From NCBI RefSeq assembly GCF_000150275.1, contig NW_002060972.1, positions 124,001-188,000 on the forward strand: a stretch of DNA of 64,000 nucleotides, in the 5' to 3' direction. The stretch is from Trichoplax adhaerens (Eukaryota > Animalia > Placozoa). Below, piece after piece: positions 11,404-13,815 of this stretch (positions are counted from its first letter, which is position 1; every line of letters starts with the position of its first letter). A program made the translations under genes and the position numbers. The notes beneath the pieces are model-generated. The model was not told the DNA's origin, did not search any database, and saw only the letters and a program-made list of their open reading frames with translations.

Positions 11404-13800
11404 AATCTTTTGATACTATCTACATCATCCCCTCCCAAGCTTGAATATCAAAGATTATAAGGTATCCAGTCAAAAATCGAAATTAATAACTCTGAGAGGG
11501 AAGACTGAAAGTATAAAATACAACGGAAATCTCTCGCAATCATTTATAAAACGATTTCCTAATATCTCCAGTGCCGTATTGTAATCACGGTTTTCTTTTC
11601 CAATTAGAAAAAACATAAATACAGAGTTTCTTTTAGGATAAGCTACGATTTATCACGTTGAAAAAAATGATAAACCTTGCGACTCTCTTTCTAAGTAGTC
11701 TCTAATTTTCCTTATTCAATAACATACTTGCGAATTGTTGCCATAAAATAAAAAGAACGTGACCCGCTGCTAATCCTATATTAATAACAAATGAATGTTC
11801 GCTTAAACAGCTACGTAGTAAGCATATATACTGTAATAAGAAATAATCTAGCTGTGAATTTCCTTTTAACGACTTTCTTTGAGTAGAATAAATACGTGTT
11901 TATTTGAAACGGGAACTTTACTAGTACAAAGAATGAAGGATCTGCCAGGAAACATAATAAGTACTACAAAGAAAGAGAAGTCTCTTTTACTATTAAGTTC
12001 AAGAGCCCCTAGGGAATGATCCTCAAGGGGAATGGTAAAGAAAAAGAGAGGGAACCCCTATTGTATAATGTACAATTCCTAACGCGCTGTATAAAATTAA
12101 AATGACCAGAAAAATAATTGGCCGTCATATTTTTGTAGCGGAAAAGTCGTTTCCTGTCCTTGCGGAATTGTAGCGAGTAATTTCTGACAATTACCTGACT
12201 TATTACTTCAACTGATACCATCGTACTTTATAGGTTGTCATCAGAGACGTTGGCTCAAATTTCATGAATACAGAATCGTGAAGAGCTCTAATCCTAAGAA
12301 ACTGCTGGTAAACATATTCTGCGACTATGGCGTTGAAAAGAATCACTAAAGTAAGTAAATTATCGCACTATTGGGCTAATTTCATTAATAACTTACATGG
12401 TACATCGATGCCAACATTAATCTATATAATATTATATTAAGAGTTTGTGTATAGTGCTGTATAGTGGTTGCATTATACGATACCTGAGTTCCCGTATTTC
12501 TAGGCTATGGGTATGCCACTGACTTGGCTAGCCAAAATCCAAGACTAAACAGTATAACGATATTATTGTGAGTTAAAAGTTGCATTAATATAGGTTATCA
12601 GCCTTAATTAACTCCCTTTACAGAAGATAGGCTTAAAATAGGGATCATCCCAGATATTGCGATGGCCTATTGAAATATATTTTGGTTCGCGTATGTCATA
12701 CTGTAATAACTCTACCCTCCTCCCTTTAATTTTAGTTTGGCCAGAATTGAACGAAAATGGGTTATAAAATATCAACTTCTAGTTCAATTGTGGGCGATAG
12801 CATTATGCTGTAATCTAAAAATTAAATAATGTAATGGTATCGCGTAAGAATAGATATAATTCTATTATTTTCCAATGATACTTTGATATTGAGAAATGCG
12901 TAAAAGAGATCAGGATGTTTTTTGGCAATTTTATGATATTATACCCGATTCACTTCCTTCAGTATACAATATTGACTAGATATTTTCTATTTGAAAATTT
13001 CTGTATATTTGTTACGAAATATAAAGTAACAGCAATCCTAATAGCATGGTTGTGATTTACTTCGCTAGGAACTGCAAGATTTGGGTCGTGAACCACCAGC
13101 TCAGTGCTCTGCCGGGCCAGTTGATACTAAAGATAGTAAGTTACTACTAGGATTCATAAAATGCAAAATTGAACTAATCATAGTATAAAGTTTATTTTAA
13201 AGGCTTTATTCAATTTTGATATAAATAGTGTTTAAGTGGCAAAGCACTATAATGGGACCTGTAAGTTAAAAAATCTGTTTTATTCTTCTTAAAATTATTT
13301 CTTAACTCAATGTATTCTAAAACTCTAAACCCCTTAGACAGACACCCCGTACCAAGGGGGCGTTTTCTTTTTAACTATCCAGTTTCCACCGGATTATCCG
13401 TTTAAGCCTCTCAAAGTATGCCTTTTATGTTGACAATGTAAATTACTCGGTTGTGAAATGCATCGTAGCTAACTGATTCCATATATACCGTAGGTTACCT
13501 TCGTCACGAGAATATATCACCCAAATATAAACAGCAATGGAAGTATATGCTTAGATATCCTTCGTTCACAGTGGAATCCAGAATTAAATGTATCTATTGG
13601 TAAGAGTACTTATATTCAAAGATCTACTCGTTGATAAGGCCCGTTTAGGACTAACCTTTATTATACGTGGTCTAGTACTTTCGAGCATCTGTTCTTTGCT
13701 TTCTACGCCAAATCCTGACGATCCGTTAGTACCAGAGATCGCTCGTATCTTCAAAACTGATCGTCCAAAGTTCAATGAGTTAGCCAAAGAATGGACTAAA
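11404..13800 (+). repeat. Segmental duplication, source block 1 (E2 upstream region plus gene)
   Basis: Near-identical to 38704-42340 apart from a 1.24-kb indel. Confidence 0.95.
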
Positions 13801-13815
13801 AAATATGCTATGTAA
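12327..13815 (+). CDS. UBE2D: Ubiquitin-conjugating enzyme E2, UBE2D/Ubc4 family, divergent paralog (148 aa, 6 exons)
   Basis: Exons 12327-12350, 13069-13135, 13229-13260, 13338-13415, 13494-13599 and 13676-13815 are all GT-AG and in frame. Protein: [13 protein letters not shown]...DYPFKPLK...[20 protein letters not shown]...[12 protein letters not shown]...WTKKYAM. The HPN motif and catalytic Cys are intact. Confidence 0.95.

Follow-up and report, generated by a model that had tools for sequence, protein, structure and literature searches.

How far can a ubiquitin-system enzyme that ranks among the most conserved, and also among the most promiscuous, depart from its family and still be kept as a gene? 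The question is raised by a locus of the placozoan Trichoplax adhaerens, found in a 64,000-nucleotide stretch of contig NW_002060972.1 (RefSeq assembly GCF_000150275.1, positions 124,001 to 188,000 of the forward strand; hereafter the window, whose coordinates are used throughout). This AT-rich animal DNA (~31% G+C) carries, at 12327-13815(+), a gene for a ubiquitin-conjugating enzyme (E2) of the UBE2D type. UBE2D has the conservation and promiscuity just mentioned, and A96, K101, and L104 (human UbcH5 numbering, as in all that follows) are the textbook positions for switching off its coupling to ubiquitin ligases (E3s); the window gene is substituted at all three. If such changes are combined in a natural and maintained copy, the locus would be a ready-made experiment on the limits of rewiring E2–E3 and E2–ubiquitin coupling, in an animal that branched early and has few E2s; if the gene is instead a slowly dying duplicate, it would be a case of ordinary gene birth and death. 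We consider the former probable: the gene appears to be an expressed UBE2D paralog, confined to the Trichoplax lineage and maintained by selection, that couples to E3s and to donor ubiquitin in an altered way; its activity and partners are predicted from sequence.

A UBE2D-type gene altered at residues 94-112

Sequence reading and script-based splicing resolved the locus into six exons, all with GT-AG introns, which join into one open frame of 148 codons plus stop. To obtain RNA joints, Logan contigs of four sequencing runs were aligned to 11900-14300, among them X5 (recorded as RNA) and X13 and X18 (guessed to be RNA). The features of the gene are as follows.

12148-12326 (+): 5′ untranslated region (UTR); spliced RNA contigs start at 12148-12165 and continue into exon 1.
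12327-12350 (+): exon 1, M1-K8, start of helix 1; ATG, GTAAGT donor, joint 12350>13069 in X5 and X13.
13069-13135 (+): exon 2, from E9 to the insertion, carrying S22 and the extra residue near G27-D29; AG/GT borders, PDB alignment, RNA joints.
13229-13260 (+): exon 3; AG/GT borders, joints 13135>13229 (X13) and 13260>13338 (X5, X13, X18).
13338-13415 (+): exon 4, with F62, K63, and a codon (13410-13412) for Leu in the window and for Pro elsewhere; splicing script, exon comparison.
13494-13599 (+): exon 5, with HPN, C85, D87, Q92, and W93, then the altered loop 7 and the start of the crossover helix; joints 13415>13494 and 13598/9>13675/6 in X5, X13, and X18.
13575-13598 (+): S94N, A96E, T98N, I99V, and K101I in exon 5; alignment to UBE2D2/3 chains.
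13676-13815 (+): exon 6 and stop, with the remaining crossover helix, N114, D117, and the C-terminal helices; X13 contig 13675-14300, zero differing letters.
13681-13683 (+): L104S, exon 6.
13702-13707 (+): C111S and D112T, exon 6.
13816-14300 (+): 3′ UTR, extending beyond 14300; X13 contig 13675-14300, which continues outward.

Membership in the UBE2D family was assessed by comparing exons singly with PDB structures, and by whole-protein searches with two database proteins, P0153 from Trichoplax sp. H2 (the ortholog) and P0119 (a T. adhaerens gene model discussed below). Every exon aligned to structures of UBE2D1/2/3 or Caenorhabditis elegans UBC-2, and the Pfam family PF00179 (UQ_con) matched the locus exon by exon, with the H2 ortholog scoring 175.7 bits against a cut-off of 27. 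For P0153, each of the best 60 PDB matches listed was a structure of UBE2D1/2/3 or of C. elegans UBC-2, aligned over residues 1-148 at E-values of 2e-80 to 4e-75. The catalytic Cys85 and its upstream HPN are present in exon 5, which aligns to UBE2D2/3 chains, and the translated exons contain the residues of a lysine-reactive active site (N77, D87, D117) as well as the backside S22. Altogether the gene keeps K4, R5, K8, S22, F62, K63, H75-P76-N77, C85, D87, Q92, W93, N114, and D117, so that the retention of R5, S22, F62, HPN, C85, and D117 reported by a first-pass annotation, made from the sequence alone, is borne out.

The segment between residues 94 and 112 is a different matter. The family-typical loop 7 (S94-P95-A96) and the crossover-helix residues K101, L104, and D112 are replaced by N94, E96, I101, S104, and T112, and alignment with the PDB chains of human UBE2D2/3 gives eight substitutions in total: S94N, A96E, T98N, I99V, K101I, L104S, C111S, and D112T. 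A one-residue insertion near G27-D29, in the beta1-beta2 loop, brings the protein to 148 amino acids (aa) vs 147. The first-pass annotation had listed S94N, A96E, K101I, L104S, and D112T; all five are there, but its list was incomplete, as it overlooked T98N, I99V, C111S, and the insertion. These positions matter for what an E2 does. Helix 1, loop 4, and loop 7 make up the surface that binds RING and HECT domains, which overlaps the E1 (ubiquitin-activating enzyme) site (PMC4822130), and it is the crossover helix that supports the closed E2~ubiquitin states, of which HECT and RBR ligases are independent (PMC4822130, PMC5758712). Within the closed state, K101 and L104 contact ubiquitin (PMC4944129), L104 packing against ubiquitin I44 (PMC4864278), and F62A and A96D abolish the E3-dependent activity of a UBE2D-type E2 (PMC3554608).

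One further residue varies. Position 13411 is T in the window, which places Leu65 in the E3-binding loop 4, and C (Pro65) according to the E2 contigs from runs X5, X13, and X18 and to the Trichoplax sp. H2 protein. The Leu65 of the reference is a variant private to that strain or else an error of the assembly.

The gene is transcribed and spliced

Runs X5, X13, and X18 come from three studies with three organism labels; their strains are near-identical and give no power for dN/dS. The E2 contigs of these runs differ from the window by 0-2 letters per piece and jump exactly over the predicted introns, and together they confirm all five introns. They also confirm N94 (A at 13576) and V99 (G at 13590). 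The transcript of the canonical paralog, described below, is present in the same runs, where its own exon letters at joints and loose ends identify it. X5 additionally carries unspliced intron 1 and intron 2 sequence, pointing to some pre-mRNA or DNA; the joints still indicate processed RNA. RNA support, which the first-pass annotation had named as a check, therefore exists in contigs of three runs and three studies: the gene is transcribed and spliced. The fourth run, X1, is probably a DNA run, with introns covered at full depth; within 13086-13799 it yields only a pseudogene-like contig, which is uninformative on 13411 of the intact gene.

Two side observations concern intron 1. A 66-nucleotide stretch at 12405-12472 is missing from X1 and X18 contigs and resembles an indel polymorphism, and a GT..AG joint 12567>12736, seen in one low-depth X13 contig, could be an alternative or antisense splice.

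A DNA-level duplicate of the ordinary Trichoplax UBE2D gene

Whole-assembly scans (105.6 Mb, 1414 contigs) with Pfam UQ_con, the exon 5 protein, and DNA found only three UBE2D-type loci, namely the window gene, a pseudogene copy in the same window, and a canonical copy at C1403:118340-122202(-) (locus L031). The last of these, as modelled, encodes 147 residues with canonical loop 7 and crossover helix, and its residues 94-112 are identical to human UBE2D2/3; the first-pass annotation had proposed confirming that a canonical UBE2D exists elsewhere in the genome, and one is indeed located on another contig. The genome also contains a UBE2L3-type gene (C1414:2331195-2331853) and further E2 types.

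Several features tie the window gene to the canonical copy. The two share five intron positions; introns, part of the 5′ UTR, and ~90 nucleotides of the 3′ UTR align at 69-78% identity, the introns at 77-78%, with similarity running from 12203 to 13903; and identical codons are used at 82 of the 108 amino-acid-invariant sites, vs 46-48 of 108 with the nearest foreign cDNAs (four sequences). Shared intron positions, alignable introns and UTRs, and shared codons show that the two genes go back to a moderately old duplication at the DNA level. Their proteins are identical at 113 of 147 positions, with dN 0.15, dS 0.41-0.45, omega (dN/dS) 0.34-0.38, and an intron distance of 0.26; a comparison of two other family members gave dN 0.045, dS 2.4, and omega ~0.02. 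We also considered that the gene might be an ancient paralog, and rejected this since codon sharing and alignable introns indicate recent common ancestry with the canonical copy at the DNA level.

The canonical Trichoplax copy, too, is more diverged than is usual for this family: it has 10-17 unique changes (e.g., at 46, 49, 53, 67, 122, 126, 137, 141, and 147), but its loop 7 and crossover helix are free of them. Elsewhere in the assembly, locus L001 (C1409:593144-593554(-)) is an intronless, divergent E2 within a 207-aa open frame, altered in the loop 7-crossover region; by eye it resembles a UBE2E-like locus at C1400 and is possibly a retrocopy.

A pseudogene copy in the same window

The third UBE2D-type locus lies downstream of the window gene, with the following parts.

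38687-42340 (+), as 38687-40319 and 41547-42340: pseudogene copy of the E2 gene, 93-96% DNA identity.
39631-39654 (+): copy of exon 1, from DNA alignment.
41547-42340 (+): copies of exons 2-6, from DNA alignment.

Intron 1 of this copy holds a 1.2-kb insertion. Exon 2 has a 1-nucleotide deletion and its donor is changed from GT to TT, W93 is a stop (TGG>TGA), the exon 5 donor is lost, and the 3′ end is truncated at about codon 143, where it is joined to a copy of 25318-25913, a piece of an Apaf-1-like gene. With its frameshift, W93 stop, two lost donors, and cut 3′ end, the copy is the pseudogene that the first-pass annotation had taken it for. It is ~4% diverged from the intact gene and has replacements at Q92, D116, and D117 besides the W93 stop. 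E96, I101, S104, S111, and T112 are common to both copies, and the pseudogene retains S94, I99, and P65. The earlier suggestion that A96E, K101I, L104S, and D112T predate the duplication that gave rise to the pseudogene is thus correct, all four being found in both copies.

This pair of copies also bears on the annotation of the window. The public T. adhaerens gene model TRIADDRAFT_33263, partial (P0119), is forced through the pseudogene and reads intron sequence to avoid the stop, and therefore describes the pseudogene copy, not the intact E2 gene. The searches run showed no T. adhaerens model other than TRIADDRAFT_33263, and so none made for the intact gene.

Relatives in Trichoplax sp. H2 and in marine metatranscriptomes

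The ortholog P0153 of Trichoplax sp. H2 is 98.6% identical to the window gene product, keeps all eight changes at 94-112, and has Pro65. The search with P0119 also found, in marine metatranscriptomes, proteins of 148 aa (P0156, P0157, and P0159) and AT-rich cDNA contigs (L047 and L048, which are the JGI contigs Ga0115100_10362305 and Ga0314685_10225058). This marine clade has the insertion in common with the window gene, along with T7, K32, Q55, P58, T68, and V70; unlike the window gene, it retains canonical loop 7 and crossover helix. A maximum-likelihood protein tree joins the marine clade and the window gene with support of 99/99, leaving the canonical Trichoplax copy outside, and a tree constrained to unite the two Trichoplax genes is worse by 13.5 log-likelihood units, though the approximately unbiased (AU) test does not reject it (p = 0.075). 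Silent sites of the marine clade are saturated against both Trichoplax genes, and the recent Trichoplax duplication indicated by the DNA evidence therefore stands. Either the ancestor resembled the marine clade and the canonical copy shifted back to the animal consensus at several sites, or the window gene converged on the clade. Among source-named proteins, the maximum identity to the marine clade is 87% (Trichoplax sp. H2), and the clade may derive from unsequenced placozoans or from another AT-rich animal group.

Clustered changes, a constrained core, and rare residues

Next, we evaluated how the substitutions are distributed along the protein. With L048 as outgroup, 15 changes are specific to the window gene (12 with every outgroup), and 8 of these 15 fall within the 19 residues 94-112 (scan-statistic p = 0.003). 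All eight changes in this segment are private to the window gene when L048 or the canonical-type L049 serves as outgroup and seven when L047 does (Thr at 111), vs zero in the canonical copy. The flanking residues 71-93 and 113-121 have zero window-gene-specific amino acid changes. We then simulated neutral evolution of the coding sequence, including 20 splice-site bases and indels, at intron-derived rates: the frame, the start codon, and every splice site remained intact in ≤0.14% of runs (P ≤ 0.0014). The reading frame and the catalytic core are under constraint, and the window gene is not a neutrally drifting copy. A young pseudogene, untranscribed and with dN/dS near 1, had been named by the first-pass annotation as the finding that would undo its reading; what we find is an omega of 0.34-0.38, the intact structure just described, and spliced RNA.

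The residues at 94-112 were also compared with those of the family at large. A profile-free scan with exon 6 of 1.84 billion representatives led to 150 UBE2D-type proteins, for which residues were counted wherever the segment was readable; in this sample, collapsed to representatives at 50% identity, proteins close to the query are over-represented. The canonical residue is present in nearly every case: S94 in 63/64, A96 in 64/64, T98 in 63/64, K101 in 63/64, L104 in 142/144, and D112 in 143/144. S104 and T112 occur together only in P0119, the pseudogene's own gene model, among 144 UBE2D-type representatives. The residues are therefore not common among UBE2D-type representatives, contrary to the further possibility, raised with the first description of the locus, that they would prove common in invertebrate Ubc4 orthologs.

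Maintained paralog or decaying duplicate

The strongest competitor to a maintained paralog is a decaying duplicate, i.e., a transcribed extra copy under relaxed selection and with no function of its own, in which the changes of loop 7 and the crossover helix represent damage on the way to a pseudogene. Such a course has already been run by the sister copy, which is dead, and it would be in keeping with an omega 15-20x the family norm, with substitutions that coincide with engineered loss-of-function positions, with the reference-private P65L in loop 4, and with a contig depth below that of the canonical copy.

Several of our own results likewise weigh against maintenance. The clustering of changes falls to p = 0.09 when those shared with the marine clade are counted as derived. 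Since the pseudogene split, and with changes polarised by the canonical copy, 4 exonic changes have accumulated in the window gene vs 13 in the pseudogene (introns, 6 vs 5), an excess that is suggestive only and not significant (Fisher p = 0.12). All four exonic changes of the window gene are non-synonymous, with P65L private to the reference, and could be drift; two others of the four, S94N and I99V, enlarge the 94-112 cluster. Relative-rate tests, with either outgroup, detected no faster overall evolution than in the canonical copy (p = 0.10-0.86; unique changes 15 vs 17, 12 vs 17, and 20 vs 10), and a lineage omega of ~0.3-0.45 also fits a partial relaxation of constraint. The near-identity of H1 and H2 is no proof of constraint, given how little the two have diverged. 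Finally, contig k-mer depth, a poor measure of expression, is 5.8, 39-43, and 5.1 for the window gene vs 256, 297-2277, and 18 for the canonical copy.

Decay nevertheless has to accommodate a frame, a start codon, and ten splice dinucleotides that are all intact at a dS of ~0.2 per lineage (P ≤ 0.0014 if neutral), together with the correct splicing of every intron in three studies. The changes, moreover, are clustered and not spread, and residues 71-93 and 113-121 are unchanged, whereas the pseudogene altered Q92, W93, D116, and D117 within ~2-3% divergence. We thus regard a decaying duplicate as unlikely, and favor the expressed and selectively maintained paralog as the more plausible account of the locus.

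Predicted coupling of a probably maintained paralog

For the maintained paralog, we propose that an ordinary Trichoplax UBE2D gene was duplicated at the DNA level to give the window gene. Charging by E1 and transfer of ubiquitin to C85 should persist in the product, judging from the intact helix 1, HPN, C85, D87, N114, and D117, which would be chemically competent, while the rebuilt loop 7 and crossover helix, ordinarily the surface that varies least in the family, would bind generic RING, U-box, and HECT domains poorly, and the RING-induced closed E2~ubiquitin state would be poorly populated. The paralog may in this way have lost most of its coupling to the many E3s that the canonical copy serves, and may be kept for a narrower task, acting with a restricted and perhaps co-adapted partner or through a transfer that is independent of the closed state. 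A more specific version, which we put forward only tentatively and think rather unlikely as formulated, is that the two surfaces were split after duplication: the canonical copy would have kept the universal E3 and closed-state surface, and the window copy, with its catalytic core preserved and natural counterparts of the E3-blind, closed-state-dead mutations made in the laboratory, would be a native RING-uncoupled UBE2D, serving one co-adapted ligase or acting by transthiolation only.

A search of the genome for a co-diverged ubiquitin found only a canonical six-repeat polyubiquitin and a five-domain ubiquitin-like protein, and hence zero candidate partners. The second of these is encoded by an open frame of 402 aa at locus L127 (C1404:1462709-1463824(+)). 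Its five ubiquitin-like domains are divergent and lack Gly-Gly ends, and its C terminus reads CCVM, so that it is not a conjugatable ubiquitin.

The first-pass annotation had offered a different functional assignment: either specialisation for HECT/RBR transthiolation, which would make the enzyme UBE2L3-like in function, or a role as a decoy, a dominant-negative E2~ubiquitin. L104S and K101I should indeed weaken the closed state, which RING-type E3s need and which is dispensable for HECT and RBR ligases (PMC4822130, PMC5758712), and UBE2L3 also has a residue other than Leu at the L104 position. However, A96E lies on the surface common to RING and HECT domains, which overlaps the E1 site (PMC4822130), so that HECT binding should suffer too; N77, D87, and D117 are kept, whereas human UBE2L3 aligns a His at the D117 position; and the genome already contains a UBE2L3-type gene. 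HECT/RBR specialisation is weakened on these three grounds; it and the decoy role are unsupported, and we judge this assignment quite improbable.

The Apaf-1-like neighbor and the duplicated block

The gene 5.6 kb downstream of the E2 encodes NB-ARC, Apaf-1 winged-helix, and APAF1_C domains, in line with the STAND gene that had been noted ~5.6 kb away in the first reading of the sequence. It belongs to a block, GNAT - E2 - Apaf-1-like, that was copied once within the window, with matching segments at 1401-1680 and 36827-37106, 11387-13799 and 38687-42340, 25318-25913 and 42339-42913, and 33074-33282 and 42903-43109. The second block (36.8-43.1 kb) has lost most of its content to deletion, its dead E2 being joined directly to an Apaf-1-like fragment. 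One segmental duplication produced this remnant; the order repeated in the window thus reflects a single copying event and not selection for linkage.

That the E2, the Apaf-1-like STAND gene, and the GNAT genes form a functional island, serving the same sensing or death pathway and duplicated as a working unit, is very improbable despite the twofold GNAT - E2 - Apaf-1-like order and the NB-ARC/Apaf-1 domains so close to the E2, as deletions have left the second unit with a dead E2 and an Apaf-1-like gene in fragments, the E2 derives from an unlinked canonical gene on another contig, and animal genomes, to our knowledge, generally do not organise pathways as gene islands. A defence island was rejected on the same evidence of a single block duplication with a dead remnant and an E2 from an unlinked gene, and a functional link between the E2 and its Apaf-1-like neighbor is unsupported.

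Comparison with known systems

By descent and architecture, the closest known systems are UBE2D1-4/UbcH5, yeast Ubc4/5, and C. elegans UBC-2 (LET-70; PDB 1Z2U), which like the window gene product are class I enzymes consisting of the UBC core only. The window gene stands apart from this family by its eight substitutions in 94-112, one additional residue between beta1 and beta2, and an omega of ~0.35 vs ~0.02. A second point of reference is the engineered UbcH5/UBC28 mutant A96D: the window gene is likewise acidic at 96, and has non-native residues at the closed-state contacts 101 and 104 in addition. Unlike those of engineered mutants, its changes are natural, combined, and fixed in two Trichoplax lineages, in an expressed and open gene. 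UBE2L3/UbcH7 resembles the window gene in having no Leu at the L104-equivalent position, according to the alignments, yet it retains the Pro-Ala of loop 7 and has a His at the D117 position, where the window gene has E96 and keeps D117. UBE2L3 is not the window gene's relative by descent, and may serve as a possible model of an E2 without RING-activated aminolysis.

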